IMG/VR virus record: IMGVR_UViG_3300042326_002445
Coordinates: 62,001 to 126,000 of that record
Reading direction: 5' to 3' (one strand)
Length of the DNA: 64,000 nucleotides
Below, piece after piece: positions 1,734 through 44,849 of the stretch. Every line of letters begins with the position of its first letter. Positions within the stretch are counted from its first letter, which is position 1. The notes beneath the pieces are model-generated. The model was not told the origin of the DNA. It ran no database searches and saw only the letters and a program-made list of their open reading frames with translations. The position numbers were made by a program, and so were the translations under genes.

Positions 1734-4700
1734 ATGAACGATCCAAGAAACAAGGGAAGATGGTACTCTTATGAAGATCAGATTTCAGAGTCTGAAAAAT
1801 TTATAAACGCTGTTAAGTCTTCCGCTGGAGAACCAGACTTTAGCGGTACTGTTACCAGTTATGAATATACAGATGGAACCTATAGGAATAAACAGGCCGG
1901 TTGGTTTAGATTGTCTGATCCAGATCAAAATGGTAAATTTTTGATAGGCGTTCATTTACTCAACGATATGTCTTGGATGGACATGAGAAAAAATTCTAGC
2001 ATTCTTAGTGGTATTGACCCAAGATATAACGTACTTAATCCAATCAGTTTGCCCGTTAAGGGTTTAATGGATCAAGATCTTTTTGGTTGGGGAGAAGACT
2101 GGAGAAGTTGGTATAATGAAAATTTTAGCTCTACTGCTCCTCCTCATGCTGGTATTTTGCCATATCCAATTCCTGACCCAAATCCAGATTTAGAAATAAA
2201 ACAATATTTTTATGATCCACATGCTTCTAACATGTGGGGAGAGCCAATGGTTGGTTATGGAAAATATTGGAGCGCAAAGTTAAATTTACGTCTCCCCTCT
2301 GATTTTAAAATCAATAAAGTTTATAAATTTTATGTTAATCAAGAAAACGATCCTAATGATATTGGTATAACGAAGAAGGCTTTTAACTATAGGTCTGCGA
2401 GCGGCTCATCCATAATGTCTATGGCTAATGTGCCTAGTATGCCTAGTATCAATTCTGCAACGAATCCTAATGTTGTTAATATAAAAAATTATGGAGCTAT
2501 TGGGGATGGACTTAATGACGATACGCAGGCATTCGTAAATGCAATTAATGCTGGACCTATAGCTATCTATGTTCCATCTGGAAATTATAAAATTACTTCT
2601 TCATTAAAAATTACTAATAATATAAGTATCTTTGGGGATATAGGATTAACTACGCTGCTTTGCGACATTAAAAATGGCCAGGCTTTATTTAATATTTCCC
2701 CCGATGGATCTCCCGTAACATACACTTATCAGGGACAAGTGTTTTTAAATCAAAAAACATTTGAGTTTTCAAATACTTTTGGTCTTAGTGTGGGTCAGCG
2801 TCTTATTTTTAGAATAGGTTATGAATCTATATCTTCAACTATATTTGAATGCGTTTATGGTGTAACTATAGAATCAATAAACAATAATTTGATTACTTTT
2901 GATGTTGGAGCTCCATTCTCCTCTGATAAACTATTGCATAAAATTGAAGTGTATGCTTCTTCTCCATCTGAAGTGATTGTAGAAGGCTTGAACATTACAA
3001 ATTATGACGACTCATCATCGTATTATAGTTTTAATTTAGTTAACGCTATTGATGTACGCATAAGAAATGTTAATATTTCACATACTTACTTTAGGTCTAT
3101 AAGAGCAAATGCTTGCTCAGGGATTAAAATAGAAAGATGCATATTCAGCAATACAGGCAATGGAGGTGGGGCAGCTGATGAACTTATTTGTTTAAAAACA
3201 AGTTATTGTTACGATATTATTTTTCGTAATATTTATGCAAATAATTGTTTTAGTGGTTTAGTTAATGCTTTTAAGTCAAGAAATTTTGAAGGGTTCAATT
3301 TATGGATGAATGAATGTTCTGATTCTTCATCATTTGCTTACATAAAAGAGGTTGTTAATTTTTCACTTTCAGATATTTATGTAAATAATCAAAATTTAAC
3401 TTTTATTACAGATCTTGGTTTAAATAGCCATTACACCACAAATAATGTATATTTGATTCAACAGCCATTAAAATTTAATGTTGCTAATCATAACGGTATA
3501 TTGAGAATAGAAAATAGAATATTTAATGGAGTAAAATCTGAAGTAGTTAGTGTTCCCATAAACCCTCCAGTTCCACCTGATGATGAAAATGAATCTTTTG
3601 AGGTTGTTGCTTGGGGTGCTGGATCAAATCCTGCAGAATATGATAGAGCAAATGCTTGGAACGATTTGTACACAACATTGCCTAGATTTTATGTAAACAA
3701 AGATCAATCTTATATACGTTATTCAGACAATCCAAAAAAAGTAGAAGTGCAAGAAGGTAATACATTTGTACTAAACGATAGCGGTCATTTGTATTCTACT
3801 GGAAGCACTAAATTTGGAATGAGACCGCTTCCAGCATTTATTTCAGATAATACAGTAATCAATTTTTCTTCTTCTTTATTTCAATTAGGAGTTATACTAG
3901 TAGATTCAGTATCTGGTAATTTAGATGTAGTAGTGCATGGTAAAAAACAATATAATATATGTAGAGATGTAAAGTTTAGTAAAGACGGAGATAGTGTATA
4001 TTATATTAATGGAAATGGTAAAATAGGAAGAGTGAATGTTAATACCCAAGAAGAAGAAGATAATATAATTTTTGGCTCGGACAATGTTTGGGTTGAAGAA
4101 AATCCATTATATATACTTCCATGTAACAGTATACAATTTACCAATGATAACTTGCATGCAATATTTGGATGTTCATATAGTTGGGAGTTTAACGCATATA
4201 ACATAGCTCAAATATACAATATTGCTCAAAAAAATAATGCATACATAAATCCCTCAACAATAGTTTTAAATAGATTAGATCCAGAAAACGCATGGATGCC
4301 AGCATGGACTTGGACTGATTGGCTAGGCAATGAAACTGATATAATAAATGATAGCATTTTGTGTCATTCTGTAAGTGATGACAGTAATCATGTATTTGTA
4401 TTTGGATTGTGGTATATCTACAAAATAAATATTGCATCTCAAGAAATAGTAAGTAAGAAAAAAATATGGGATATTTTTACGCCAGGATTAAATGTAGATG
4501 ATCCTGTTCCTATAGCTTATGCAAGATACTTGCCAAATAGCTCTAAATGGTTGGTCATGCTTTTAGATACTTATAATTTGCCTGATGCAAATGGAAGACT
4601 TGGTGCTATTTTAGACTCTAATTTTAATGTCCTACATTACATAGAGGACTTGTCTGATGACGAAATACCATCTTTGATGTATCCTAATGTGCATAAGCAG

Positions 4701-7700
4701 GTTGATATTAGCAATGATGAAAGTAAAATTGCGATTGCCTCATATTCTTATACTGGAAAATGGACTTTTGTGAGAACAATTAGTGTTGATAGTGGCGATT
4801 CTTTATGGACTTTAAAGTTTGACGATGAAAATTATGATGATTACGTTGCTCGTTATGTGAAATTTTCACAAGATAATAACTATATTGTTGTAGGTTTTGG
4901 AAAAGTTGTTAGAATTATTAATAGTGTTGGTTCAATTTTAGAAATTGATACTCAAGATACCGAATATTTAAAATTTGATTCATTTATTGACGATTTGGCT
5001 ATGGGTGTACAAAACAACGATATTATAGTTTGCACAAGATCAAGTGGCGCATGGTGCATTGCTGGTTGGGAATCTATAATTAGCCTTGTTCCTACAGAAG
5101 AAAGTAACATAGAAAAATTTCCTTTTTGGCTCAGCGCCCTAGGTGGTGTTAGAAAATTTTCGTTTTCTCCAAATGGTAGTAAATGTGTATTTTGGAGTTG
5201 GGACAATAAATATTCAGTTTCAATTACTCCAAGACTTGAAGATTTTAGTTTAGTATCAACAAATTTTATTATTAAAGATAAATCTAATTTGCATATAGAT
5301 GTTTTTGACTATATAGGAGAAAGCATTCCAACTGCAATTGCGATGGGTGAAGACAATGCAACTATAATTTTATCCAACGGATCTTTATTCTCATGGGGCA
5401 CTAACAGGCAAAATGAGACAAATTGTCCAGAAGTATCCAATGCATTAAGCGTGCATTATGTTTCTTCATATTGGTCAAAAGCTTTTTTTGATGACGATGG
5501 ATTTGACGATGGTAGTTTAGTATCTTTGCGTGGCAAGGGATATATAGTTCTCTTAAGAGATGGAAGAATAAAAATTTGGGGTAATTGGGTTTTCTTGGAT
5601 GGCTATTCAGATCTTCTTCTCATAGAAGATGCGGTCAAAATATCTGCTAGTTCTTGGTATGTAACTGTTCTTCACGCAAATGGCACTGCAACTTTGCATG
5701 GAGAAAATGAAATAATTAATTCTGAATATGAATTTCCTAAAAATTCAACAGACATTATAGATATAGCCTCTTCTAGGCTTGGTGGTATGTTATTAAAATC
5801 AACTGGTGATTTAATTTACTGGGGTTATGAAGCTGCAGGTGGAGATTCGTCTACTCCAGATCCATTTACTGAAGGTCTTTATTTAAGTCCTGTCCCACCA
5901 GGTAATATTGGAAAAGTACGCACATTGAATACGTCATATTTTGGAGTATATTCTGTAATTACTGAAAATAAAAGAGTGCGATCTTGGGGCTGGGATAGCT
6001 TTAGATTATGTTCAAGCAGTAATGATGATTTAGATGGAGATGGAATTCCAGAAGTTTTTTGTAGTGGCGTTGTAAGAGAAGGTTATAATTATCATAATGA
6101 CCCACCATTACGTGGTAGTATTATTGATATTTCTGCTGGTAGATTTCATACTGCATTTATAATGAATGATAAAACTGTTTACCTAACAGATTGGGCTTCT
6201 GATAAAGTTGATAATTATATAGATTTTCTTTTATGGTATCCAGCAGCAAATTCTTTTGCTCAATCTGATATTCCGTCACGTTTTAATAAAAATATTAAAA
6301 GTGTTTCTAGTGGATTTGGTTACACTTATTTTATAAGAGAAGACAACTCTGTCTTTGGGATTGGTGCAGACCCTGGAATGGCAACAGTAAATAACTTGTT
6401 TGCATGGTCCTATCCTTGGGACCCAGATTTGGAAATGCCACTTTTTTTACCATATACATTCCAACTAAATACTCCAACACAGCTAACGCATGCAAAAAAA
6501 ATTGCTTCTGGAGATTTTCATACTGCAGCAATTACTATGGACAATAAAGTAATGTGTTGGGGTTATAACAAGTTTGGGCAATGTGATGTTCCAGAAGATG
6601 CTGTTGACGTTATAGATATTGCTGTTGGCAGATTTCATACGGTAGCAATTAAATCAAATGGCTCTGTCGTGTGTTGGGGTAGAAATAATAAAGGACAGTG
6701 CTCTCCTCCTGCTTTCTCTGAAGGCATAAAAAAAGTATCATCGTGCATGAGTCACAATGTTGCTTTAACAATAGGTGGCAATCTGGTTTATTGGGGTAGT
6801 GGAGGTCATTACGATGCACTTTCTCTTTTTAATGGTAATCCATTTCCATCTGAAGTTCCAAACTCTCGTGGAGATTATGCTGGAAGTGGAAATTATGTAG
6901 ATGTTTCTACCGGAGTGTTTCATACTTTAGCTTTAAAGTCTGACGGCACTGTGGCATTATGGGGTAAGGCAAATTATGAAACTGGTATACCTGGATTTAG
7001 TAATAATTTTGGACAATTTGATTATCCAGAATTAAATGGTAAAAAAGTTGTTAAAATTTCAGCTGGACATTATCATAATGTCATATTGCTAAAAAATGAA
7101 AATATTATCACAGAATCTAGAAATTTTGAATTAGCAGATGGCATCGTCAAAAGCATAGAGTTTAGTGTTGGAAGCTCAATTGGCTTAAATGGGTTGCAAA
7201 TATACAATGAAAATAATTTGTCTTCTGCATTTTTTCCAGAAAGCTTGAACGCTACAGTAAACAAAAAAATTGATGGCTTTGATTATTTTGGATTAAATTA
7301 TCCAATTAATGATTACTCTAATAAATCTTTTTCATGGATAGTAAATTCTCTTGCTAGTGCTCAGGATATAACTTTTAAAATAAGTTATTTTGATTACTCC
7401 GATTCTTATTCTGTAGTAGATGACAATGAGATATCTTTATATTACGATGAAGAATCTTCTATGTGGAATGTAAATGTTGACAAAATAGGAATGCATGCAT
7501 TTGTGGTAATGGAGATTCAAAAAACATCTTTATCTTCGAGCAGTAGCAGTTCTTCTAGCTCTTCTAGTTCTTCTAGTTCTTCTAGTTCTTCTAGTTCTTC
7601 TAGTTCTTCTAGTTCTTCTAGTTCTTCAATATGCACAAGAGTATGGAGTGGCCCTTATGGGTGCCCCGACATAAATGGAGATGGCGTTATTGACTTTAGA

Positions 7701-9497
7701 GATTTAGATGCACTTATTGCGCTGTCCGGTCGGGTAAATTACAATTCCAGACAATCCGTTGCTGCTGATTTAAATGGAGACGGCAATATAAATGTAGCTG
7801 ACCAAATATTATTGCTCAATTTTGGGTATGGTTGCTGCGAATGTCCTAATTTTGTTTGGCCAGTTTCCAGTAGCTCTAGTAGTTTTGCTTCGAGCAGTTC
7901 ATCATCTTTTGAAGATGAGTATATTGATTTTGCATCTTCATCAAGTAGTTCACGTCCTATCGGTTCATCTTCAAGTTCATCTTCAAGTTCATCTTCAGAA
8001 GAACCAAGCTCATCAAGTTCTAACGAATTTAATCAAGCTGCAAATTTTGCAAATGTATCTGGTCAAAGATCTTTGTCTATAGGTGAAGAATTTGGCATAC
8101 AATATTATAATACAGGATTTGGTGGATCTGTAGCAGACAGTCTAAATATTAATTTTAGTCAATTGAGTCCTGTTGTTATAGCAAAAGGAGATTCATATAG
8201 TGGAATTATTACGTTCTTTAACGGCTCAAAGGTTGGCAAATATGATGTTATATCTTTAGAAGTCAAAAATGAGTCGATTAAATATGCAGGTTCTGTTCCT
8301 CATGCAGTTCTGGAGGATTCTTTTGAAGGTGTTAATACCGGGCTAACTGCAGGTTTAGGTCAAGTAGAAAATATCAATGTAATATCTCAAAGAAGCAAGA
8401 TGCTAGATATGTATGTTGATAGCATCAGATATGAAACTAATTATCTTGGTTACTATAAATCATTTACTTCTCAAAAAGAAGCGGTCGAATCAAGCGGTTC
8501 GTTTGTAACTAATTTTGAAGAAATTACTTCTAGAAACATAGATAATCTTTCTTCAGACATTTTGCATAAAAAGATTGTTTCTAGTTCTCAAGCAGTTAAG
8601 GAACTTGGCGTTTTACAGCAAGTTGTAGCAGTTAATAATGAATTCATGCTTATAGTTGGTAGTAAAAACCTTGGCAAATTAAACAACAATTTAGATTTTG
8701 ATTTTATAAACTTTAACTTTGAAGATGGAGAGAATTTGCTGAGTGCTAACGTATTCGATGATGGAATAACTGTTTGTACTTCGAGTAGGCTTGCGGTTTT
8801 CACCTTTGAAATGGAATTAAGATATTCAGTTGGCTATCCAGGAGGGATTGGCTCTCCTATATGCGGATATGGCAATGATTCTGAATTTGTATTAAGTACA
8901 AGTTCTGGAATATTCTATAAATTTTATGATGCACCAAATTTTATTAAAGTTTATATTCCTTCGATTACTGGATCAAATATGCCAGATGGAATATATAAAT
9001 TCACACCTACTAGTAGTTCTAATATTGGTTTAGGAAAAAATATATACTGGACAAGCAACAATCAATCGTTCTCAAAAATATCTACAGAAACTGCTTCGTA
9101 TCATGTAAGATCTGTAGCAAAATTCTTTAATAGATATGTAGTTGCAACCGATAAGGGAGTGTTCATCTCTGCACTTAATATGCTTGGGTCTAGCAGTCTG
9201 CAAGCGACTCTTGCTACAGAATCTGTTATTGCAAATAGTTCTACTTCTTTTGTTGATATAGTTGTAGAGGAAAATCAAGTTGGTTCAAATCTTGTTGGTG
9301 CTACTGTGTACGCATTAAGGTCTGATGGGGCACTTTTCGTCTCTGAAGATCCTGCTAATTATTTTGATATTATACAAACTCCTATTGCTAAACCAATTAT
9401 ACTGGTTACAAGCGGATCTGATGTACTTGTATTCTCTAATAACAATGTGTATTCTAAGAATAAAAACATTGTTAAAACTTTAAACAGGAGTATATGA
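1734..9497 (+). CDS. Giant (2587 aa) multidomain tailspike/adhesin-like protein: pectate-lyase-3/beta-helix, beta-propeller, RCC1 repeats, poly-Ser, dockerin-like EF-hand pair, C-terminal propeller
   Basis: VVNIKNYGAIGDGLNDDTQAFVNAI (~2470); RCC1 repeats such as IASGDFHTAAITMDNKVMCWGYNKFGQCDVP (~6500); CPDINGDGVIDFRDL...ADLNGDGNINVAD (7662-7848); no signal peptide. Confidence 0.7.
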   Translation: MNDPRNKGRWYSYEDQISESEKFINAVKSSAGEPDFSGTVTSYEYTDGTYRNKQAGWFRLSDPDQNGKFLIGVHLLNDMSWMDMRKNSSILSGIDPRYNVLNPISLPVKGLMDQDLFGWGEDWRSWYNENFSSTAPPHAGILPYPIPDPNPDLEIKQYFYDPHASNMWGEPMVGYGKYWSAKLNLRLPSDFKINKVYKFYVNQENDPNDIGITKKAFNYRSASGSSIMSMANVPSMPSINSATNPNVVNIKNYGAIGDGLNDDTQAFVNAINAGPIAIYVPSGNYKITSSLKITNNISIFGDIGLTTLLCDIKNGQALFNISPDGSPVTYTYQGQVFLNQKTFEFSNTFGLSVGQRLIFRIGYESISSTIFECVYGVTIESINNNLITFDVGAPFSSDKLLHKIEVYASSPSEVIVEGLNITNYDDSSSYYSFNLVNAIDVRIRNVNISHTYFRSIRANACSGIKIERCIFSNTGNGGGAADELICLKTSYCYDIIFRNIYANNCFSGLVNAFKSRNFEGFNLWMNECSDSSSFAYIKEVVNFSLSDIYVNNQNLTFITDLGLNSHYTTNNVYLIQQPLKFNVANHNGILRIENRIFNGVKSEVVSVPINPPVPPDDENESFEVVAWGAGSNPAEYDRANAWNDLYTTLPRFYVNKDQSYIRYSDNPKKVEVQEGNTFVLNDSGHLYSTGSTKFGMRPLPAFISDNTVINFSSSLFQLGVILVDSVSGNLDVVVHGKKQYNICRDVKFSKDGDSVYYINGNGKIGRVNVNTQEEEDNIIFGSDNVWVEENPLYILPCNSIQFTNDNLHAIFGCSYSWEFNAYNIAQIYNIAQKNNAYINPSTIVLNRLDPENAWMPAWTWTDWLGNETDIINDSILCHSVSDDSNHVFVFGLWYIYKINIASQEIVSKKKIWDIFTPGLNVDDPVPIAYARYLPNSSKWLVMLLDTYNLPDANGRLGAILDSNFNVLHYIEDLSDDEIPSLMYPNVHKQVDISNDESKIAIASYSYTGKWTFVRTISVDSGDSLWTLKFDDENYDDYVARYVKFSQDNNYIVVGFGKVVRIINSVGSILEIDTQDTEYLKFDSFIDDLAMGVQNNDIIVCTRSSGAWCIAGWESIISLVPTEESNIEKFPFWLSALGGVRKFSFSPNGSKCVFWSWDNKYSVSITPRLEDFSLVSTNFIIKDKSNLHIDVFDYIGESIPTAIAMGEDNATIILSNGSLFSWGTNRQNETNCPEVSNALSVHYVSSYWSKAFFDDDGFDDGSLVSLRGKGYIVLLRDGRIKIWGNWVFLDGYSDLLLIEDAVKISASSWYVTVLHANGTATLHGENEIINSEYEFPKNSTDIIDIASSRLGGMLLKSTGDLIYWGYEAAGGDSSTPDPFTEGLYLSPVPPGNIGKVRTLNTSYFGVYSVITENKRVRSWGWDSFRLCSSSNDDLDGDGIPEVFCSGVVREGYNYHNDPPLRGSIIDISAGRFHTAFIMNDKTVYLTDWASDKVDNYIDFLLWYPAANSFAQSDIPSRFNKNIKSVSSGFGYTYFIREDNSVFGIGADPGMATVNNLFAWSYPWDPDLEMPLFLPYTFQLNTPTQLTHAKKIASGDFHTAAITMDNKVMCWGYNKFGQCDVPEDAVDVIDIAVGRFHTVAIKSNGSVVCWGRNNKGQCSPPAFSEGIKKVSSCMSHNVALTIGGNLVYWGSGGHYDALSLFNGNPFPSEVPNSRGDYAGSGNYVDVSTGVFHTLALKSDGTVALWGKANYETGIPGFSNNFGQFDYPELNGKKVVKISAGHYHNVILLKNENIITESRNFELADGIVKSIEFSVGSSIGLNGLQIYNENNLSSAFFPESLNATVNKKIDGFDYFGLNYPINDYSNKSFSWIVNSLASAQDITFKISYFDYSDSYSVVDDNEISLYYDEESSMWNVNVDKIGMHAFVVMEIQKTSLSSSSSSSSSSSSSSSSSSSSSSSSSSSSSSSSICTRVWSGPYGCPDINGDGVIDFRDLDALIALSGRVNYNSRQSVAADLNGDGNINVADQILLLNFGYGCCECPNFVWPVSSSSSSFASSSSSSFEDEYIDFASSSSSSRPIGSSSSSSSSSSSEEPSSSSSNEFNQAANFANVSGQRSLSIGEEFGIQYYNTGFGGSVADSLNINFSQLSPVVIAKGDSYSGIITFFNGSKVGKYDVISLEVKNESIKYAGSVPHAVLEDSFEGVNTGLTAGLGQVENINVISQRSKMLDMYVDSIRYETNYLGYYKSFTSQKEAVESSGSFVTNFEEITSRNIDNLSSDILHKKIVSSSQAVKELGVLQQVVAVNNEFMLIVGSKNLGKLNNNLDFDFINFNFEDGENLLSANVFDDGITVCTSSRLAVFTFEMELRYSVGYPGGIGSPICGYGNDSEFVLSTSSGIFYKFYDAPNFIKVYIPSITGSNMPDGIYKFTPTSSSNIGLGKNIYWTSNNQSFSKISTETASYHVRSVAKFFNRYVVATDKGVFISALNMLGSSSLQATLATESVIANSSTSFVDIVVEENQVGSNLVGATVYALRSDGALFVSEDPANYFDIIQTPIAKPIILVTSGSDVLVFSNNNVYSKNKNIVKTLNRSI
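7533..7628 (+). repeat. 32-Ser tract encoded largely by a 9-nt tandem repeat (TCTTCTAGT)x7 at 7560-7622
   Basis: Read directly: seven perfect copies preceded by TCTTCTAGC. Confidence 0.95.
7866..8021 (+). repeat. Interrupted poly-Ser low-complexity region
   Basis: SSSSSSFASSSSSSFEDEYIDFASSSSSSRPIGSSSSSSSSSSSEEPSSSSS. Confidence 0.9.
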
Positions 9498-10987
9498 TGG
9501 CATATATGGCTTCTTTATCTAATGAATATATGTTAGAATGTGGCGGATTTCCAGGGCCAATGGGTGACAAGTCTTTTATTTATAGAGAAAATGTATACTT
9601 TTTGGGAAAAATAGAAGTTTCTAATTCTTCTGCCGAGTATCTTGGTTTTCCAGGTTATTTTAAAATTTACGAAGCACCATTTGCTATTGTGTCTGGCTTT
9701 GACGCTAGCACTAATAATTTGCGTCTTGTATCAAATGGCTATAATCCTCCAGTTTTTAGAAATAGAGGTATCTGTAAGGACGATATAGTTGTTGGCGCAA
9801 AAAGTGGAGCTGTCAGATATGCTGCGCGTGATTGGAAAGTTTACACTGCAGATGGATCTTCTATAGAAAAATCAGGAATTAAAGAAATAGGGTACAACCC
9901 TACATATCATGATTTGTTTGATTTTTCTACTCATTCAGATGGCGCAATTTTTAATAGAATTTTTCCATTAAATAGAAATTTTTATAATAATACTATTTTT
10001 AATAATTTAGATCAAAAATTTTCTTGTGTAGCATTATTTGATAGAATTCCACTACCTGTTCCTTACAGTGCAAATAAGCACGGCTTTAGGCAGGCTGTGG
10101 CTGTAACTCCTATGCATGTATGTTTTTCTGAGCACGTTTGGCCATATATGGGATATGATTTATTATTTTATGACACCATTGAAAAAACTATTATCAATAG
10201 AAGAATAGTAAAAAAATTTAATTTTAACCTACCTAGTTATATTTTAAAGAATGAAGATAATGATAATATTCCATTTTTTCAAAATGATCAGGGAATAGGG
10301 TTGCTTGACAGTCCGCTTCCTCCAGGTGTTTTATTAGCTAATGTTCCAGATATAGCTTATAAGAAATATCCTGACGAAGCTACTAAAACAAGAAAAATTC
10401 CACTTGTAGCAATAGACTTGTCTGGACGTGGAATGTGTTGTAATGCGATATCTGGTTTTTTTAAAAATGACTCTTTTATTAATATATTAAATATAAAATC
10501 TAGTCAATTTATAGATGCATTAGCATATCAAAATGCATGTTTAGATACTCTTGGAGTTGGAGATTCTAGTACAATGTTTTTTACTTGTATTGGTAATCGT
10601 TTAATATATATGGGTTCTATAGTAACAGTATCAAATACGCTACATGGACTGAATGGAACATTTATAAATCAAGAAATTGGATATGGCAAAATAGATTTGT
10701 CTTTCTTTCATTATCCTGACAGAAATGGGACTTTATCTTCTAGTGTTGAAAATAGATATTTTCAAAATCAACTATATGGTACTTCCCTTTCTTTTTGGGC
10801 TAAAGTAGGAAATAGAGCTTTAAATTACATATTCACATCTCCTGATATTTGGGGTGAACCAATAGATCCATCATATGTGCCTGCAAGGATAAAAATTACT
10901 AATGATATAAATATTACAGAGTCTAATTCTTATTTAAATCTATCTAACGATAACCTAATAGATAGAAAAATTAAATTTATATCATGA
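9494..10987 (+). CDS. Putative trypsin/chymotrypsin-fold serine protease
   Basis: Triad-like motifs in the correct order: AVTPMHVCFSEH (His 10133), NDQGIGLLDSPLP (Asp 10286), GDSSTMFF...LIYMG (Ser 10565). SD AGGAG at 9486; ATGA overlaps with both neighbours. Confidence 0.55.
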   Translation: MMAYMASLSNEYMLECGGFPGPMGDKSFIYRENVYFLGKIEVSNSSAEYLGFPGYFKIYEAPFAIVSGFDASTNNLRLVSNGYNPPVFRNRGICKDDIVVGAKSGAVRYAARDWKVYTADGSSIEKSGIKEIGYNPTYHDLFDFSTHSDGAIFNRIFPLNRNFYNNTIFNNLDQKFSCVALFDRIPLPVPYSANKHGFRQAVAVTPMHVCFSEHVWPYMGYDLLFYDTIEKTIINRRIVKKFNFNLPSYILKNEDNDNIPFFQNDQGIGLLDSPLPPGVLLANVPDIAYKKYPDEATKTRKIPLVAIDLSGRGMCCNAISGFFKNDSFINILNIKSSQFIDALAYQNACLDTLGVGDSSTMFFTCIGNRLIYMGSIVTVSNTLHGLNGTFINQEIGYGKIDLSFFHYPDRNGTLSSSVENRYFQNQLYGTSLSFWAKVGNRALNYIFTSPDIWGEPIDPSYVPARIKITNDINITESNSYLNLSNDNLIDRKIKFIS

Positions 10988-13900
10988 TTAATTTTAGTAA
11001 ATGTTCACTGAATGGATGCAGCTTTAAGCTTTTATACGATCAGCAGTCTTCAATTTTAGAAGATCAGATATCTTATTTGGCAGTTAATTTTTTTAATTCT
11101 GATTCTTATTGGGTTCCTTACAAAACTAATTATCCATCTTTGTCAGATATTTCTATGAAATTGGGCAAAGTGTCTTTAGATGCTTCTGTAGCCGATACCT
11201 CTGAATATTCTTCTGGAAGCATTTCATTCTCAGTAGATATTAAAGATGAGGGAGATTATGTAGCTGCGTTTAAAGTTTCAAAAGAAAATGGGATTTCTAT
11301 ATGCTCATCTTTAACTATTTCTCATTCTTTGCTTCCTGGGACCAACACTACTTCTTACCTTTTTTACCCTGATAGATATGGGGTCTTTAGTGAAGTGCCT
11401 GTAAATCAAGATAATAAAATTTTTGATTTTCAGCATAATATGTCACAAATTGGACAAGACTCAGTGTGGATTACTATTGAATTTTCTGCTCTTGTAGCTG
11501 GTCGTTATATATTTAATATGAGTGTTGCAAGTAATGAGTCATTTGATTTTATTGATTTAGATACTTCAAATTTTATAGTTGAAGGTTTTACTATTTTTAA
11601 AAAGACACATTTTGATACTAGCGGTTTGTCTTTGAGAAATACCGCAAGTGTCAACTCCTCTACTTTTAGTTCTTATAGGGTAAATTCATTAGCAGAATCT
11701 CATCCATTATCATTTAATTCATTTTTGAATACCATTAAACAGGGTGAAGCAAGAATAATTGGTTTGTTTGGTCTTTATGAAGACAGCAAATTTTATTCTT
11801 TAGAGAAAAGTGTTTCTTTTAAACTTTCTGATTTTTCAGAAAATCCTAGATCTGTTATTTCGATTATACCTGGCGGTATATCAGCAGATGAAACATTATT
11901 AAATAAATTATGTGTTATTTTTAGTGAGCACTATAATAATAGTTTGTGGCATTTTTCTTATTCTGCAGATTCATCTGGAGTATCTGGTAAGACTTTTAAG
12001 TTAATGGGTGAAGATTTAGGAATACAGCAAAAAACTATTTCTTTAGATATTTTTTCATCAGATAATAAATATAGTAGTGAAGATTCAGGTGATAATTTTA
12101 CAAAAAACAAAGTTGTTATACAGCCGCCTGTTGGGGTTCCACTAGAAATAAGTAAAATTACAGATAATTCTATTTCAGAAAATTTAAAAGACAATTTTGC
12201 CTTGTTGTCAGATGATCGTGGTGAATATTATGCTCTGAATTTACCAGATAGACACCAATCATTTGTTTTAGATCATAGCGGAAGTATGTCTTGGTCAGAT
12301 GTAAGCGGTGAAAGATTTGGATTGATTAATGACATAGTTGACAAGTTTGAGCAAATATATCCTGGCAGTGTCAGCTATTCTTTGACAACATTCAAAGGCA
12401 CTCCAGTGATAGTGGAGTGGTTTGGTGCAATTGAAAATAATGTAGAAGACAGCAATGATCCAGATTCTGTGAGAACAGGATTTCTTCAAGGTAAATATAC
12501 AAACTTTAGAGGATGCCACATAGTAAGAAAGAAAGGTGTTGCTCCGTCTAGTCCTACTGATGGAGAAATTTTATTCAATGGTTTTGATAAAGTATTTTAT
12601 GATACTGGTCTAGAAGAATCAGTTGATTATTACTATAGTATTTATCCACTAGACAGTAATAATAGACTAGGCTCTCCTTCTATAATAAAAGCAAAAACAC
12701 GGTCAAACGAAATCGTAAAGGGTATAAAAAGCTTATCAGGCAAAGAGTTAATAGGTACTGGTATTCGTAGAGATGAGAGATCATTTTTTATATACCATAT
12801 GAACGAAGGCTCTGGCAGTAAAGTATATGATTTTTCTGGAAATAACTTACACCTTTTTATTCCTAGTGCTGCTAGAAACTCAATTATTTGGCTTGACGAG
12901 TCAGAGTCTCCTCCTGTAGACGCAGATTCTAATGTAGGAAAGGGATCTGGGCTTAGACTGACTGGAAGAAATAGCCTATGTTCTTGGACTGGAAGTCTTC
13001 AATCGGTTTTTAATGGTCTTAATATTTCATTTTGGTGTTATTTGTTTCAAAATATAGGTACTATAGAAAAAAACTTTATTTCTATACGTTCTGGAGAAAA
13101 ACTGTTTGAAATAAAGTTGGGAAGCGAAAAAATATCTGTCAGACTAAACGGAACTACTGTTGGTGTTTTATCATTTAGTTTTGAAGTTGAGTCATGGAAC
13201 CATGTATCTGTAAATATATCTGAAGATTGGAATACGTGTACTCTTTATGTAAACGGTGTGCCGGTTGATTCTTTTTTGCTTGGTTATTACAAAGAGCTAA
13301 TATCCTTGTTTTATTCTAATTACATTAATGCTATAGAGTTAGGAGATATTAGCGACAATGGCTTTAAGGGAAAAATTTCAGAAGTTTCATGCAGAAAAGA
13401 AAGTGTATCTAGTGCAGAAATAGAATATGAAAGCTCTTTTGTGCCTAAAGATAATGGCGACAGACTTTTACTGCTTTCTTGGTTTACTAATCTTGACAAC
13501 ACTGGACACAGAATTGTTATAAAATATAAACAAGAATCTGGTCCTCTTAGACTTTTAGATGAGGATATTGCAGGCCCAGCTAATTATGGTAGGTATCAAG
13601 GTGATTCTACTTTTGGTAACCCTCCAAATACTCCTCCTGGTAGAATCATTCAGTCCGACTTGAGAGCAAGAATTTGCTACGGGGACGACATCGGTCCAGT
13701 TTCTGCAGATGATGGAATAAGTGTTTTTGATTCTTACGTAGATGGTGATGTCAATGAGTGTGCATTTGCATACCAATTTAATTCATCAATAACAAAGAAA
13801 AATAGATTTTCAGTTGACATACCTGGATTTAGGAATTTCTTTAGAATATTTAGGATTAACGAAAATGGAGAGCAGAGCTATCCAGACGACAGTGGCTTAT

Positions 13901-16900
13901 TAGAATATACTCCAGCATCTTACGAAGACTCTTCTTTGCCAAATAATGGAGTGGGTGCAGTAGAAAATATCTCTGTCATTACTGGCAATAGAAAAATAAG
14001 ATTGAAATGGGATGTTCCGCAAAATAGCAATATAGAGTCTGTAATAATATATTATTCTGACGAGCCTATTGAAGAAGATTTCTTAGATCGCAGTGATAAT
14101 TATCCTCAAAAATATCCAGTGTTTGCTGGTATTAAAGAGCAAAATAGTTTTACTCATTTCTATGGAAGAGTAAGAGACTCTCAAAGAAAAAGTGCAGCAC
14201 CAGGCTCATTCCAAAGCACTTTGACTGCAGCAATAGCGGAATCTGAGGATGATTTAGATAATGGCAAAACAGCTTATTATGCAATAGTATCAAGAGATCA
14301 ATATGGAAGGATGTCAAGTCCTGTTTTTGTCAACGGAACTCCGAATGAGGAAAACAATGACTCCGGGATACCTCCAGAAAATATAATTGCACATCGTGCT
14401 TATGGAGTTGATTACAACACTATATCTTTAAGATGGATTAATCCAGTATCTGCTTCAAGGTTTTTTGATATTAATGGATGGCTAGATGATAATGTTGTTC
14501 TTTATTTTAGGGTGACAGATATTTATGGAAGAAGAATAGATGAGCAAGGTGATTTTCAAATCAAATTTAGATTTAATGATTTTTTAAATGGAATAGTTTT
14601 TACCAGTATATCTGGTGGAGATGACATAAAGCCAGCATCAATTGTTGGTTTATTTGATACAGAAAATGGATCTCCTGTAGTAGAAAATATCAGTTTTTCT
14701 GAACTTGTTTCCTATAATGTGAGCAATTTAAGTAATGGCTGGACAAGAATAACTGTTAACACAAATAATGCTTCTCTTTCTGATAGGAATTGGGCTGATG
14801 CAGTCTATACCGAAGTTTCAATGGTGTTTGTAAGAAATAATAATGTTGGTCAAGATCCTATATTTTCATTTTCTACTCAACCTATTAGGATATATTTAAA
14901 GCATCCTTTAAAATTTGATTTAATAGTTAACGACGCAGTTTTCTATAGTCCACAATCATACTCTATCTCTGGTCCCAACGCATCTGGTCCAGCTATATGC
15001 GATTATGTATATAATGGTGGAAACACTGACATAGGTGGAGAATCTTTGGTTTATGGTGCTTACAATGGCAGATCTTTACCGTATACTTTTGCTGTTAATG
15101 CATCATATAAAAATTCACCATTGCCAGTTGGTTCTACGGCAAATATAGATATATTTGAGGATTCCGAGCCTTCTTTTGCAAATACTATTGATGGTCCTGC
15201 TTTGCTTTTGCGTGGCGGTTTTTCTGGAATTGTTGGCGCCAATCCAGAATTAGGAACTCCTGCTTCTCAGGCAGGATTAAGTAATGAAGGTCTTATTGTA
15301 AGAAATTCCTATCCGTTTAGTACAACCATAAGTCCCATATCAGGACAGATTTTATTTGAAGATACCCCATCTGGTAAAGAGTCATTTGGAATTGGTGAAA
15401 TAAGAGTTCCAGGATCAAGATCATTTGGCAGAGTTTTTGCGACTGTAAGAGTCGGATTGTTCTATAGAACTCTTGGTTTTTATGTGGCATTTATTCCTAC
15501 TTTATATGTAAAAATAAATGCATCTGCTCCTAATCCTGATGGAGAGGACGTTGCAACTCAATACGCTTACGCATATATAGTTGATCCAAATAAATTTAGG
15601 ATTTCTATGAATGAAAATTTTAATGGAAATATATCCATAGAAAATTTTGCAAAACCTGTTCCAGATGGCACTCAAGTTTTGTGGCGTTTAACAAAAATGA
15701 GAAATGCAATAGATAGACCTTTTTATTCAACTTCTCAAAGAAGTGTTTCTGGAAATGCTGTTGACAAAACTATAGATGGTATATCTCAAAATGTTGTTTT
15801 TGGTCCAGCGGCAAATATAAATTCTAGTATCATTGAAGTAGACAGCGGTAATGTGTTGCTTATTCCAGAAGAATATGTTATTACAGCTACAGTTTCATAT
15901 GGAGGAGCTACAGCCTCTGCATCTCAAGCAGCTTGTATATACCCTGTTACTGTAAATGCAGATCAAGTTTTACCAGCTATTAGTCAAACTTCTTTTTACT
16001 TTGCTGGCAAATCATTTGGCAAAAATGTAAGTTATGTTCAATCAGTGTATGCAGACGGAGAAGATTTTGCAGTTTTAGAAATAATCAAAGATCCAAGACT
16101 TCTTCTTGGAAGCGATTCAGACATAAGAATAGAAGACATAAAAGCATTTTGTAAATGTTACAATGCTGATGGCACTAATGGCGGTGTAGAAAATGCTTAC
16201 TTAACAACCTTGCCAACCAATCAGATTATTGAGATTAAGGCAAATAAATTACCGGATTGTCAGGGTTCTGGATTGTCTTCTTATATACGTGGGAAGATAG
16301 AAATACTTCATGGATCAAGTTTAAATTATTATGTTGGTAGTAACGGAAAACTATTGGCATCATCAAATGAAATAGGTCTTGATTCTACTCTAACCGAAGT
16401 TAGAGAGTCTAATCGTGCAGATATAGTAGTCAGGGCAAATACTTTTATCCCATTAAAGTGGAAGTATTACACTAAGCTAGAGGCAGATCCAGGTCCGTTA
16501 ACACCAGTTTTTTGTAATTTTATAAATTCTGGTTTTGCAAGTTCAGTATATCATAATGTTACAATCTCTGCCTCTACCTCTGTAATCATAAACGGAATGG
16601 AAAAATCAATATTTAGTGATGGCGGAATTGCCTCCGGCAACCCACCTAAAATGCTTAAATTTATTGAACCTCTTTATTTGCAATTTGCATACATACTTAA
16701 AAATGGACAGAAAGTTAATGGCGAAGTGATAGAGGTTGATGGAAATAGTGTCTATGAATTTATATTTGCTATCAAATTTGCAGGACTTCCAGTACCAGAT
16801 GGCACAGAAGTAAAGTTTTATAAGTGTGGCAGTAATGAGCTAGTATTAAATTCAAATGTTGGTTATACTTTTACTAAAGAAGAGATAGGTCCATGGAGCT

Positions 16901-19900
16901 ATGGTCCGAATGGAGAGTTGGAAACTTCATCCATAAGCATGGTATCTATGAAAATATCTCCTATATCTCCAGTTAACCCAATCTTCGGATCATTGTTTGC
17001 TGAAATAAATTATGATAAAAATGGACAAGTATTTAGGCAAAGGGTGGCTGGGATAGATTTTGTTTACACTGGGGCTAATAGTTTGGCAGTTACTTCTAGC
17101 AATTTGCCAAACACAGGCTCTGGCGCAGTAAACACTGGAAATGATCCTGGAAATGGACAATTTGGCTCTGGATTGCCTTCTGGAGGTGGGTCTGCGGGTG
17201 GAAATGGCCAGTCTAATAACTTTGGTTCTATTGGGGGCGGAACTTCTGGCAGTCCTCCTGGATCAAATCCCGCTACATCTTTGTTGCCATTTCCTGAAAT
17301 ATTTGCAGAATTAGAAAATGCTACTTCTAGACTTTTGATAAATACTGCTTTTAGTAATGAGTGTTATATATATGATTTATTAGTTTCTGATGCAAGCTAC
17401 AAGTGGCGTAAAATTGCCAATATGAACCTTAGGCGAGCTATGCATGTCTCTGAATTTGTGTCTGGAAATCTTTATTCTATCGGAGGGCTAGTCGGATTTA
17501 CAAGTAGCGACACAAACGCAGATGCTACTGTTTTAGTAACAGACACATGCGAAAGATGGAATCCTTCAGAAAACAGGTGGACCACTGCAAGAAAGTGTCT
17601 GTCCAAGCGATTCGGGTGTCTTTCATGTGCAGACGATAGATTTATTTATTTAATAGGTGGTTTTGAAACAAAATTGAAAGGATCGATTTCTCCAAGTGGT
17701 CAAGCGGTTCAGTCGAGAGTTCCTTATGTAAGCAGAAGATTTGAAAGGTACGATACAATAACTAATACATGGCTTTCTATGGCTCCGATGCCAGTATTTG
17801 ACTTAAATGGCAATCAATTAGATATCGCTGCTGAAAATACATTGACTGACAGGATAGGTAATGATGATGTCAATTTTGAGCAATATGGCTGTGCTCTTGG
17901 AAAAGCATTTATTAAAAACAATAAAATTATTATTATTAATGGTGCAAGAAAAGTTGATGATAAATTAAATGTAGAAAAATATAATGATAAAATAATGGTA
18001 TACGACATAGGCACAAACACTTGGAGTGTAAGTGCAAATATTCCATCTAGCCTTGCATCTGAATTCTGTAGATTATATCCAATTGTGTGGGAAGAGAATG
18101 ACTCTGTTCACATATATGGCGGGTCTTCTTCTATTATTGAAAACGTAAATGCAGAAGTTGGAGATGAAGAATTTATAATAGAAAAAAATAGAAGTTTTGC
18201 TTTGCAAAATTCTTTTGGAATTCCTTTAGAAGATATAGTATATGGAGCCATATCTATAGAAAATATATATAGATCTGATTATCTTTTTGGTAACTTGCCA
18301 AAAGCAAGAGACCAAGTTTCTTTTGCTCATATTTATGGAGAGGGCGTATACCTGTTTGGCGGCAGAGTATTTGCTCAAAATGAAAGTCTTGGAACTAATG
18401 CCACTAGAACTGCAGAAAGAATATCGGAAGTAGACGAAGCTTATATAGTAGAAAATTTAGTAAAATCACCTTTTGGATTTAGCAATACTGGATGTACTAA
18501 TGACGGCAGTCGGTTGATATATATTACAGGCGGAACTACTACAAATCAATCTCCAGGATTTGTAAGATTAGAGATCGAGGCTTATGGAGAACAAACCGAG
18601 CAAATTAATACAGAAAGATTTAGTAGCATAGAGCCAGCAAATGCTACTGTGAGGCTTGATGGTTTTTCTGGAGTAGATTTAAAAATTAGTGCATATGATG
18701 ACGAGGGAGATTATGTAGTAGGAAATTTAGAAGTAGAAATTTCTGGTTTATTAGCTTATGGAACTGGAGATGACGAATTAGAAGGTGGAGCATCAATAGG
18801 TGGGATGCAGAGAGCTCCAACATTAAACAGAAGAAGAAAAAGAAAAGGTACTAGAGTATATCCAATAGTCTTAAATCCATACAGGGTAAATCTTTCTAAT
18901 GGGATTGGATATTCGCGACTTGAGGGAAGAAGCGAAGATGTGCTAAAGAGTCTCACAGAAATACAGGAAATATTAAACGCAGATTTGTCTGCTGACCAAG
19001 CAGTTTTAGGTACTGCTTCCGAATTACAGCTTAGGCAAGGAAGCGTTAGATTTCCTTATAGAATTAGTATAGTTGGTAGAGTGATTGATGATTTCTATTT
19101 TGGAAAGACTTCTTATGTATCTACTGAAGATCAGGAAGTACAACAAGAAGTTTTCTTACCAGAAAATGAGGTCACTGATGTAATCGCTGATGCCGGAGAC
19201 TTTGGTAGCGCAACAGTAATGCCTCCAATGCTGCCAGCTTATGCTAGTTCCTCTTCTCCTTTACCAATAGCAGACTATGGCCCTGTTTTAACATGCAGTG
19301 CAATAGGCGTTATAGGTCCAGTAGGTGACGTAGATTTGTTTGCTTTTATTCCACCAAAATCTGGGGTGTATACTATAACAATAGAGCAAAGAGGTTTTTC
19401 TCAACTTTTGCCAATGGTGTCTGTATTCAACGAGTCTCAATTTCCTTATCCAATTAACGGTACGGCATCTAACGAAATTAGATTTGATAATTTTGGCTAT
19501 TCTAGTGATGGGAGAACCGCAAACATAGAATTACTAAAGGATGTAACTTATTATTTCCAAATTTCTTCATATGCGGGAGCAGATAGTGCAGAAGTCAATA
19601 AAGTTGGTGCTTATAGGATAAGATTTACTATACCAATTGCAATAATACAAAATCAAGGCACAAGCAGCAGTAGCAGTAGTAGCTCTGGAAATAATTCAAG
19701 TAGCAGTTCAAGTAGTAATCAAAATTCTGGAGAAGTTGTATCTTTTAATATATTTGAATATGTTACGGAAAATACTATCGCAAATCTTAGTACTCCGTGG
19801 TCTTCTGTGCTAAGAGATTTCTATAATACTTATTTTAGATTTTTACTAGCAAATGGCGGCTATAATAGTCAGGCTTTACAGGTCGCCATAGATACTGTAA

Positions 19901-22903: not shown

Positions 22904-23629
22904 ATGAATCTCTTGATTGGCATATTGCAATACAACAAGTCGGCTGTTACCGCCAAGTGTATAACCTGTATAGAAAATTATACACATGATATAAATTATT
23001 CAATATATCTTTTAGATAATAATTCCAGCGATGGGTCATTTCAAGAAATTGTTAATTTTTGTAAAGATAAAAAAAATATTACAATTGAAAAAAGCGAAAC
23101 CAATACTGGAGTGATAGGCGGAAGAAATATGATATTTAATTTTTTTAAACAACAAAATCAATTTAGTCATATTATGTTTATAGACAATGATCAGTTTGTG
23201 AAAGAAAAATGGGCAGAAGGATATGTAGATTTATTTAATCTTCATAAGAAGTCTTTGTGTGGCATTGAGGCTTGGATTTTATCTAGTAATTTTACACCAT
23301 TAAGAAAATGTTCTTTAAAAGATAGTGGGTTTTCTTACGTAGGATGTGGAGGAATGATGATTTCGCGAGAAGCTTTTGACGAAATAGGAAGTTTTGACGA
23401 TAGTTTTAATCCCGCATACTTTGAAGATCCAGATTATTGTTTAAGAGCGTATGACAAAAAAATTCCTGTATTATGGAATAAAAATTCAAAGATAGATCAC
23501 ATGCCTCATCAAACTCTTGGTCAAAGATCATTGAATGCCTCTATGTCATTTCGAAAATCTCTTAATAATTTTAGAAACAAATGGAGAGGTAGATTTGGTG
23601 GTGGTATACTTTTTAGGAATGAAGCATGA
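22904..23629 (+). CDS. Glycosyltransferase family 2
   Basis: LLDNNSSDGS, NTGVIGGRN, FIDNDQ (DxD), GGMMISREAFDEIGSFDDSFNPAYFEDPDYCLRA. Confidence 0.9.
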   Translation: MNLLIGILQYNKSAVTAKCITCIENYTHDINYSIYLLDNNSSDGSFQEIVNFCKDKKNITIEKSETNTGVIGGRNMIFNFFKQQNQFSHIMFIDNDQFVKEKWAEGYVDLFNLHKKSLCGIEAWILSSNFTPLRKCSLKDSGFSYVGCGGMMISREAFDEIGSFDDSFNPAYFEDPDYCLRAYDKKIPVLWNKNSKIDHMPHQTLGQRSLNASMSFRKSLNNFRNKWRGRFGGGILFRNEA

Positions 23630-24702
23630 AAAAAGCATGTATTTTATCTAACCATATTTATCCATTTCACGTTGGTGGATCTGAAATGGTTATTAAAAAT
23701 GTAACAGAACATTTATTAGACAAAAACATATGTGTTGACGTATTCGGTTGGGATGTTTCAAAAGATACTGTACACAACGGAGTAAATATTTATAAAATGA
23801 ATATTGAAAAGATTAAATATATTCTTTTTCATTATGATGTTATAATTATATATAGTGATGCTTTTATAAATCTTATGCAAGTTTTGAAGTTAAATGTAGA
23901 ATTCAAAAAACGTATAATTATTTTTCCTGTTGGATTTACGGGAATGAGGTCGAGTTCTGCGCTAAAAGAAACAATGTTAAAAAATTTAACGCATATTAAT
24001 TTTGTATGTCATGATGAAAATTACGTTGATGCAATTTTCCTTAGGGAAAATAACATCCCATATTCGATTATCCCAAATGGCGTAAGTGAAAAAGAGTTTA
24101 AATTTACACCTAAAAATATATCTAATGGAGATATAAAAAATATCATTTGTGTGGCAAATACTTTTCCTAAAAAAGGACATGTTGAGCTTTTACAAGTTTG
24201 CGATATTTTATTAGAAAAATTAAAATTTAACTTACACATTTTTTGTCATACCCCGTCATGGGATGTTGGTAAGCGATTGCAAAATCAGCTTTGTCAATTT
24301 AGTAAAACAAAAAAGTATCCAGTATATTTTCATATAGATAAAGATCGTTCTGAGCTTATAAAAGGGCTAGAGTCTAGCGATTTGTTTTTATTCTGTTCTC
24401 TTAAGGAAGTTGCTCCTTTGTGCATTATAGAGAGTGCTGCTTCAGGTCTTCCTTGGGTGTCATTTAATGTTGGCAACGTTAGTAGTATTTCCGGTGGCAT
24501 TGTTAATAAGGATTGCTCTTATGACCATGCAGGTTACGTTATTCCAGAACAAAATTTGTTACATAATCATGTAAAAGTTATTTTAGAATTATTAAATGAT
24601 GATAAAAAGTACTCACAGTTATCTGAAGAAGGTGTAGATTTTGCTAAAAAAATAACTTGGAGCAATATAGCTAAACAGTATGCAAAAATTATACAAGATT
24701 AA
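23626..24702 (+). CDS. Glycosyltransferase family 4 (GT-B)
   Basis: GGSE N-terminal motif, IIPNGV, KKGH, SDLFLFCSLKEVAPLCIIESAASGLPWVSFNVG. Confidence 0.9.
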   Translation: MKKACILSNHIYPFHVGGSEMVIKNVTEHLLDKNICVDVFGWDVSKDTVHNGVNIYKMNIEKIKYILFHYDVIIIYSDAFINLMQVLKLNVEFKKRIIIFPVGFTGMRSSSALKETMLKNLTHINFVCHDENYVDAIFLRENNIPYSIIPNGVSEKEFKFTPKNISNGDIKNIICVANTFPKKGHVELLQVCDILLEKLKFNLHIFCHTPSWDVGKRLQNQLCQFSKTKKYPVYFHIDKDRSELIKGLESSDLFLFCSLKEVAPLCIIESAASGLPWVSFNVGNVSSISGGIVNKDCSYDHAGYVIPEQNLLHNHVKVILELLNDDKKYSQLSEEGVDFAKKITWSNIAKQYAKIIQD

Positions 24703-25471
24703 ATCAAGAATCACTCGCAGTAATCACGATGTATGTGTTATATGCTGTGCTCGTAATGGATCTGTATATGCAAAAGAGTCACTTGAATCTGTTATCTTAC
24801 AAAAGTCTTGTGCTTTTAAATTGATGCTACTGGATGATGCATCTGAAGATTCTACTTTAGATGTGTGTTCTCAAATTTTGTCTAGTAGTGAAGTGGATTA
24901 TGAAATATATCATGTCAAAAATAATCTAGGAGTTCCCTCTGCCAGAAATATTCTTATATCTCATTGTGATTGTCAATTTATTGCCATACACGACATAGAT
25001 GATATCATGATGCCATTTAGATTATTTTTTCAAATTAATTTTTTAAAACAATTTTCAGATGTTCATGCTGTTGGCGGTCATGCGTATAAAATAGATAGTC
25101 AAGGCAACTTTATAGACACAATGTCTTATCCCCCAAGAGATAATGCCGATATACTCAATATGTTGCCAGGAAGGGTTAATCCGATGATTGATCCCACCGT
25201 AATGATGAGATTACATTCTTTTCAAAAAATGAATGGTTATTCTGAAAATGAAAATTTAAGACTGGCGCAAGATTTTGATTTATGGATTAGAATGTGTAAA
25301 AGTGGTATGAGACTAGCAAATATTCAAGGTCCTCTCACAATTTATAGAGTCTCAGATTCTGGATTGACTGTTAGTAAAAAAAATGACATGATAAAAGCTC
25401 ATGTATACGTTCAATCTATTCACAAATCTTTTTTAGAACAAATTAGGAGCATAAATGGCAAAAGCAAATAA
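24680..25471 (+). CDS. Glycosyltransferase family 2
   Basis: LLDDASEDST, NLGVPSARN, IAIHDIDD, AQDFDLWIR. Confidence 0.9.
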   Translation: MQKLYKIKSRITRSNHDVCVICCARNGSVYAKESLESVILQKSCAFKLMLLDDASEDSTLDVCSQILSSSEVDYEIYHVKNNLGVPSARNILISHCDCQFIAIHDIDDIMMPFRLFFQINFLKQFSDVHAVGGHAYKIDSQGNFIDTMSYPPRDNADILNMLPGRVNPMIDPTVMMRLHSFQKMNGYSENENLRLAQDFDLWIRMCKSGMRLANIQGPLTIYRVSDSGLTVSKKNDMIKAHVYVQSIHKSFLEQIRSINGKSK

Positions 25472-44848: not shown

Positions 44849-44849
44849 A

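Follow-up and report, generated by a model that had tools for sequence, protein, structure and literature searches.

What does a gene of some 500 codons do between two genes that encode giant proteins of 2587 and 3965 amino acids (aa)? The question is raised by a 64,000-nucleotide stretch of viral DNA, hereafter the window, which comprises bases 62,001 to 126,000 of the 223,646-bp IMG/VR record IMGVR_UViG_3300042326_002445 (completeness ~55% by CheckV). Long open reading frames (ORFs) tile the window without gaps, all on the plus strand and at a G+C content of ~33%; translation table 11 keeps every one of them open, and no alternative genetic code is required. The gene in question encodes a protein that we call P0001:

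9494-10987, plus strand: coding sequence of the trypsin-like P0001, 497 aa (ORF and translation, 11 full-length relatives, same flanks on five other contigs)

As shown below, this is a real, conserved gene. Its product is predicted to carry a complete catalytic triad on a chymotrypsin fold, and we lean toward the view that P0001 is a very divergent PA-clan serine protease that forms the fixed middle of a three-gene module and would act on a partner giant or on protein at the host surface.

The fold assignment comes from two AlphaFold models. Model 1, of the full-length protein and built from 10 sequences, is poor (predicted local distance difference test [pLDDT] score of 55); a fold search with it still retrieved S1 proteases only, its residues 177 to 450 aligning to chymotrypsin numbering 20 to 245. 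Model 2 covers residues 110 to 445, was built from 40 aligned core sequences including distant matches, and reaches a pLDDT of 77 and a predicted template modeling score (pTM) of 0.78. A preliminary description of this DNA had named structure prediction for a double beta-barrel with triad geometry as a check on its claim of a protease, and model 2 bears the fold out by matching solely chymotrypsin-fold proteases: compared with 48,161 representative PDB chains in VIA, its top 50 matches are without exception trypsin-like (S1/S6-type) proteases, with Z scores of 10.6 to 12.3, root mean square deviations (rmsd) of 3.3 to 4.7 Å, and 167 to 198 aligned residues. Foldseek returned at least 500 matches in the full PDB at E ≤ 1e-3 (best E, 1e-6). 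Similarly, a search of BFVD with model 2 found viral chymotrypsin-like proteases, and the ESM Atlas yielded unnamed phage protein clusters of 276 to 350 aa (TM score, 0.52 to 0.67), some of which bear the Pfam families Peptidase_S6, Trypsin, or Dockerin. The protein-language-model look-alikes of P0001 are serine-protease clusters, which we count as a lead only. Sequence and profile searches of the PDB with P0001 returned noise only, and the Pfam Trypsin model matches 2 of 40 relatives weakly (E, 0.001). On the basis of the models, we regard the predicted chymotrypsin fold of P0001 (two six-stranded beta-barrels, PA clan) as settled. The protein divides as follows:

9494-9823, plus strand: N-terminal beta-rich domain, residues 1 to 110 (eight strands, pLDDT ~70 to 80 in model 1; 34 of 110 columns invariant)
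9824-10018, plus strand: conserved extension ahead of the catalytic barrels, residues 111 to 175, a signature of the family (pLDDT 81 to 97 in model 2)
10019-10858, plus strand: chymotrypsin-fold (PA clan) protease domain, residues ~176 to 455 (VIA, Foldseek, range of model 1)
10859-10984, plus strand: C-terminal tail, residues 456 to 497 (...IDPS-VP-RIKITNDINI-E...KIKFIS; 17 of its 42 columns do not vary, and identity per column averages 0.77)

The extension has the consensus I-K-E-x-G-Y-x-P-x-x-H-D-L-x-D-F ... P-x-N-x-x-F, in which E131, P136, N160, and F163 are near-invariant over 40 sequences at ~20% identity. Within the protease domain lies a poorly modeled insert of ~60 residues (~291 to 350). 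The N-terminal beta domain is restricted to the subfamily associated with giants and is missing from distant relatives, and the C-terminal tail, which lies outside the protease fold, is the best-conserved segment of P0001. From this pattern we infer that the N-terminal domain and the tail may be docking elements.

The preliminary description read the motifs SEH, NDQGIGLLDSPLP, and GDSS as the His, Asp, and Ser motifs of a protease in chymotrypsin order. Their positions are confirmed:

10115-10117, plus strand: H208, which stands where WVLTAAHC has its Trp (40 of 40 family members have it, triad-less ones included)
10133-10135, plus strand: H214, equivalent to His57 (SEH is S212-E213-H214; relatives read AITPRHIITAAHY and LISPRHVVMAKHY there)
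10286-10288, plus strand: D265, equivalent to Asp102 (NDQGIGLLDSPLP begins N264-D265; D265 opens D-x-x-I-x-L-L-D-S-P-L-P, compare D-I-A-L-L-K-L-S-S-P)
10559-10567, plus strand: G356-D357-S358, the oxyanion-hole Gly and the equivalents of Asp194 and Ser195 (S358 codon, 10565-10567; GDSS is G356-D357-S358-S359)

Hidden Markov model (HMM) alignments place A-V-T-P-M-H208-V-C-F-S-E-H214 over L-I-S-P-R-H-V-V-M-A-K-H and A-I-T-P-R-H-I-I-T-A-A-H in distant relatives; by this alignment, the segment is the classical (W)VLTAAH(C) element, with H214 in the His57 position. H208 was also considered as the catalytic His and was rejected: it occupies the Trp position, six residues before the His of TAAH, and is kept in every triad-less member, and its role is presumably structural. 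The spacing in P0001 is 51 residues from His to Asp and 93 from Asp to Ser; in chymotrypsin, the corresponding distances are 45 and 93. In model 2, H214 begins a short helix after a strand, D265 begins the strand formed by residues 266 to 271, and S358 lies in the loop before the strand pair 361 to 366 and 369 to 379, the same strand, helix, and loop placement as that of His57, Asp102, and Ser195 of chymotrypsin.

All three residues are invariant in 11 of the 12 full-length subfamily members, and this, together with a fold search that gives chymotrypsin-fold proteases alone, puts the motifs beyond chance. A complete triad is likewise present in 20 of 39 scorable sequences, these sharing ~16 to 25% identity with P0001. 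The retention of the triad in lineages this divergent speaks for selection on catalysis there, the P0001 lineage included. Further, His214 and Ser358 are kept or lost together: 21 of the 39 sequences have both and 17 have neither, with one exception (Fisher P = 3.5e-10, uncorrected for shared ancestry). Asp265 is missing chiefly where His and Ser are missing too, and, of the 39 sequences covering its column, 37 have the oxyanion-hole G356. The difference of GDSS from the canonical GDSG, to which the preliminary description drew attention, is real but is an ordinary variation within the family consensus GDS[SNG][STN], distant relatives having GDSSSP, GDSGNP, or GNSGSP. Taken together, the alignments and model 2 identify H214-D265-S358 as the predicted catalytic triad, in canonical order, and we infer that P0001 is probably an active protease.

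The gene keeps its place in other genomes. A word-index search found ten proteins of 496 to 514 aa with 44 to 100% identity to P0001, and an exhaustive profile search added two full-length relatives, P0014 and P0015, at ~33% identity; P0001 thus has 11 full-length relatives at 33 to 77% identity. The profile search gave just 24 matches in total among 1.84 billion cluster representatives, so the family is rare. The order giant, ~500 aa, ~3,950 aa is repeated on each of the five further contigs inspected, with these protein lengths:

L002: 2068, 514, and 3929 aa
L003: ≥1310, 483, and 3983 aa
L013 and L014: ≥1794, 500, and 3937 aa
Contig of P0004: ≥1080, 496, and 3968 aa

A stop codon and a start codon likewise overlap at the junctions of these modules. 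The giant-flanked module is common to a small clade of large phage-like elements. No match was found by tblastn with P0001, P0039, and P0037 against 50,697 phage records or by megablast with 10 kb of the window, and a pattern scan of IMG/VR with the family alignment confirmed no locus. Every family member that has a source name is labeled "hypothetical protein." P0001 belongs to a rare phage family that is undescribed in Pfam, NCBIfam, and PHROGs. Its kind, the PA-clan serine protease, is already known; judged by sequence, it is a new family inside that clan. Within the reach of our searches, the constant position of such a gene with a giant on either side has no earlier description.

The preliminary description also reported ATGA overlaps of the protease gene with both neighbors. 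Both can be read in the sequence: the upstream ORF of 2587 aa stops at 9497, and the downstream ORF of 3965 aa starts at 10984. One further feature bears on translation:

9486-9490, plus strand: Shine-Dalgarno sequence AGGAG, within the 3' end of the upstream giant gene (read from the sequence; 3 nucleotides before the ATG at 9494 and 6 before the ATG at 9497)

Because the relatives of P0001 all begin MAYMA or MTYMA and AGGAG stands 6 nucleotides ahead of the second ATG, the true start is probably at 9497, which would give a 1-nucleotide TGATG overlap and a protein of 496 aa. Four-base overlaps of start and stop codons occur at about ten other junctions of the window; coupling is thus a habit of the whole genome and no mark of this gene. 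There is no Shine-Dalgarno sequence visible ahead of the downstream giant, making it plausible that this giant is translated by re-initiation at the P0001 stop codon.

The two giants have the following composition:

1734-9497, plus strand: upstream giant, 2587 aa (Pfam: pectate-lyase-like beta-helix, RCC1 propeller, type I dockerin; poly-Ser linkers)
10984-22881, plus strand: downstream giant, 3965 aa (Pfam: weak VWA, Kelch propeller, weak discoidin; poly-Ser/Gly linkers)

Such compositions are adhesin-like or fiber-like, as far as domain content can tell. The upstream giant is conserved and collinear between genomes in its C-terminal 470 to 530 aa alone (~8079 to 9494), where it shares 54% and 42% identity (BLASTP) with the neighbors on L002 and L003, respectively; the rest of its modules are rearranged or missing. 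The downstream giant keeps its collinearity in relatives and shares 55% and 50% identity with its counterparts on the same two contigs across more than 3,300 aa. No protease core was found inside either flanking giant. The type I dockerin of the upstream giant (residues 1979 to 2027; window 7668 to 7814) has an E value of 3e-5. A dockerin also occurs in the upstream giant of L003 and in a distant relative of P0001, P0019 (E, 2.7e-7), and in one ESM Atlas cluster of phage trypsin-like proteins 73% of the members have one.

Three glycosyltransferase (GT) genes (GT2, GT1, GT2) directly follow the downstream giant (window 22904 to 25471), and further GT genes, with a nucleotide-sugar epimerase and a dehydrogenase, lie at window 50225 to 51826 and at genome positions 171863 to 174259 and 189173 to 190204 (L016). 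Together with the long poly-Ser linkers, these genes suggest that the element may glycosylate its own giant proteins. Window positions 1 to 22881 form the end of an ~85-kb block of co-oriented, mostly overlapping ORFs (genome 371 to 84881), whose giants measure 3286, 1776, 2808, 1849, 1245, 1228, 5596, 2587, and 3965 aa; a second block (genome 127234 to 152899) holds giants of 1936, 3947, and 2671 aa. PHROGs is blank for nine of ten mid-sized ORFs among the giant blocks. The window also encodes a bacterial-type replication and repair set (28480 to 29997, 32110 to 33564, 35192 to 38489, 40602 to 41786, 44787 to 46781, and 56798 to 57928) comprising a DnaE-type Pol III alpha, a DnaB-like helicase, RecA, UvrD, a DnaX-like clamp loader, and a ResIII/DEAD helicase. 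The Pol III alpha is split into a PHP ORF and a core ORF that overlap by 8 nucleotides.

Beyond the clade of giant-associated proteins, the family extends to T4-like aquatic phages, from which the distant members come (profile E, 1e-18 to 1e-4). Some of them occupy the gap between gp47 (Metallophos) and gp46 (SMC_N), either as proteins of ~500 to 580 aa or as the N-terminal part of larger ones (1,650 to 1,750 aa); in others, which directly follow gp23, the domain is fused to a gp3/gp19-like domain of the tail-tube type. On the T4-like contigs L004, L006, L007, and L008, a conserved gene of ~105 aa, between gp47 and gp46, comes after the gene with the trypsin-like domain in every case, and this small gene persists where its trypsin-like neighbor is missing. 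In a maximum-likelihood tree of 40 core domains, from which the triad columns had been removed, the 12 giant-associated proteins form one clade (Shimodaira-Hasegawa-like approximate likelihood ratio test, 98), the triad-less sequences fall mostly in one separate clade from T4-like phages, and at least three to four changes of triad state are required. The 19 of 39 scorable members that lack a complete triad nonetheless keep H208, E131, R312-G313, and G356-D357. Outside the window, a 1245-aa ORF of the same genome (35293 to 39030; L012:3293-7030) shows a weak, degenerate match to the trypsin-like core over residues 126 to 372, without the catalytic His or Ser (profile E of 1e-7 in a search of 410 ORFs; compositional bias is high); it may represent a pseudo-protease paralogue at the head of a long protein.

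Several results weigh against the reading of P0001 as a divergent protease that serves the giants. P0001 has no match in Pfam, PHROGs, or NCBIfam even at E up to 10, and the Pfam models PF00089 (Trypsin) and PF13365 (Trypsin_2) do not match it at E ≤ 10. The term "cryptic trypsin-like protease" in the preliminary description is nevertheless apt, since the fold and the triad residues are found where these three libraries are blank. Aligned by hhalign with E. coli YdgD, the family profile matches only in the GDS motif (E, 0.0024; probability, 12%), and with DegP nothing aligned. In the wider family, His and Ser are gone from roughly half of the members, through at least three to four separate losses. 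Within the giant-associated subfamily itself, P0011, of which the identical sequence stands on two independent contigs, lacks His and Asp and still lies between giants of at least 1794 aa and 3937 aa (L013 and L014). Catalysis is thus dispensable to the module, the role of the scaffold outlasting it, and the conserved role of the scaffold may be other than catalysis. Finally, no capsid, portal-side, tail, or terminase hallmark gene was recognized in the 223.6-kb record: searches with S78, sheath, baseplate J, and terminase 6N models found no match, and another 20 ORFs scanned with PHROGs yielded no virion protein. The S77 model was equally blank but matched in no control genome, so that its silence shows little. 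A virion module is either absent from this ~55% complete record or too divergent for detection; the "virion protease" that the preliminary description offered is therefore an assumption, although a virion location of the three-gene module is plausible from its gene content.

With these points in view, we still lean toward a protease in the service of the giants. P0001 would be made alongside them, from its own Shine-Dalgarno sequence and with the downstream giant re-initiating at its stop codon. It would dock on the giants through its N-terminal domain and C-terminal tail and then act as a site-specific endopeptidase, either processing a partner giant during assembly or attacking a host-surface protein once the adhesin-like giants have bound. 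When P0001 was modeled in complex with the upstream giant's conserved C-terminal module, the single prediction scored 0.00, which weighs neither way. If P0001 is active, a limited, assembly-linked cut in a partner or an action at the host surface would be its most likely task.

The alternative that survives best, possible in our judgment yet clearly the less probable, makes P0001 a non-catalytic adaptor that links the two giants. The trypsin-like cleft would bind an extended segment of one giant, the N-terminal domain and C-terminal tail would hold the other, and the intact triad would be a relic or of secondary importance. There is a parallel, in gene order only, in T4 gp35, which sits between the long-tail-fiber genes 34 and 37. 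Such an adaptor would fit the conservation of the C-terminal tail above all other segments, the restriction of conservation in the upstream giant to the module that adjoins the P0001 gene, the survival of the fold signature in the triad-less 19 of 39 members, and the loss of His and Asp by P0011 inside the same module. It also fits the best structural match of model 2, UmbA4 (9oee_A; Z 12.3, rmsd 3.5, 174 aligned residues), with an Umb1 chain (8w20_C) at Z 11.7: in the Streptomyces umbrella toxin, UmbA's trypsin-like domain is catalytically inactive and binds the N terminus of UmbB in its major cleft (PMC11062931), which makes UmbA a clear model for an adaptor of this sort. What an adaptor leaves unexplained is why 11 of 12 subfamily members, and relatives at ~20% identity, should keep the triad and the oxyanion Gly, which is unexpected without selection for catalysis; moreover, the triad-less sequences belong mostly to the separate T4-like clade.

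A broader proposal, which we consider doubtful, would join the protease and the adaptor. Here a phage-specific trypsin-like family would toggle between active protease and inert adaptor, and huge phages would use it as a hub for assembling or maturing giant-protein organelles of several megadaltons; in the lineage of P0001 it would make a defined activating cut in a giant of ~3,950 aa or in a host surface protein, and in other lineages the same cleft would just clamp a partner.

The preliminary description itself offered two functions. That P0001 travels on the particle and digests a protein envelope or S-layer of the host at adsorption seems unlikely to us, even though the giants carry modules of adhesin and enzyme type (a pectate-lyase-like helix, propellers of the Kelch and RCC1 kinds, and discoidin, VWA, and dockerin domains) and T4-like relatives fuse the domain to a gp3/gp19-like tail-tube-type domain beside gp23; no virion gene is recognizable in the record, and the loss of triad residues, as in P0011, counts against it as well. 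That it is a dedicated maturation protease, cutting both giants as polyproteins at their poly-Ser/Gly linkers, is more improbable still. The intact triad, the tight linkage to both giants, and the conservation of poly-Ser linker positions in the L002 homologue would suit such cutting, but linkers of poly-Ser are of an ordinary flexible kind that is often glycosylated, and the three GT genes follow directly; the protease is a separate ORF embedded in neither giant, no cleavage motif could be defined, and the module persists in the P0011 lineage without His and Asp. A capsid (prohead) maturation protease we regard as next to impossible: the record shows no other protease-like gene, S77 (uninformative) and S78 models being blank, but the record is only ~55% complete, the gene lies among adhesin-like giants and not by portal, scaffold, or capsid genes, T4-like relatives have a separate Peptidase_S77 gene beside gp22 and gp23, and the known tailed-phage prohead proteases have the herpesvirus-assemblin fold and not the chymotrypsin fold.

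Huge phages carry blocks of giant genes. As a probable divergent protease strictly linked to two giants, P0001 would be the one small, tractable, enzyme-like component of such a block and hence a practical experimental handle on giant-gene modules. Its family, trypsin-like and overlooked by current HMM libraries, is useful for annotation, and the triad-bearing and triad-less branches offer material for studying the conversion of a protease into a binding module.

Comparison with known systems sets P0001 apart in several directions. The prohead proteases (S77, S78, and S80) differ from it in their assemblin-like fold with a His/Ser active site and in a gene position beside portal, scaffold, or capsid genes, whereas P0001 adjoins adhesin-like giants and glycosyltransferases. 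Viral 3C-like polyprotein proteases are embedded in their own substrate, which has recurring cleavage motifs, whereas P0001 has an ORF and a Shine-Dalgarno sequence to itself. With S1 proteases (factor Xa, elastase, V8 protease, and E. coli YdgD), P0001 shares the double beta-barrel (Z up to 12.1), the His-Asp-Ser order, and the Asp-to-Ser spacing of 93, and its family has motifs of the TAAH, DIALL, and GDSGSP types. P0001 differs from them in having ~10% identity and being invisible to Pfam Trypsin and Trypsin_2, in its additional pre-barrel segment, invariant His208, ~60-residue insert, N-terminal domain, and C-terminal tail, and in showing no signal peptide at its N terminus (by eye; no predictor was run) and no sign of zymogen activation.

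The Peptidase S6 proteases, or SPATEs, give the longest structural alignments (195 to 198 residues; Pet, 4om9, Z 12.0; Hbp, 3ak5, Z 11.4) and have a serine motif of the GDSGSP type in common with the P0001 family, in which weak Peptidase_S6 signals occur. In the distant relatives P0018 and P0019, the domain heads a protein of 1,650 to 1,750 aa, as in S6/SPATE autotransporters. P0001, unlike these, is a separate protein of 497 aa without autotransporter barrel or signal peptide, and the Peptidase_S6 HMM (PF02395) has no match in the genome. The trypsin-like proteins of T4-like phages (P0017 to P0045) are true distant homologues that share the pre-barrel extension and H208; they differ in architecture, have mostly lost the triad, and none lies between giants. 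UmbA, finally, is part of a secreted bacterial toxin and not of a phage element, and P0001 departs from it in keeping the full triad, as do 11 of 12 subfamily members, and in having no detected sequence relationship to it. What the two have in common is a trypsin-like fold tied, in P0001 presumably, to a very large multiprotein assembly, which in UmbA also carries carbohydrate-binding modules.

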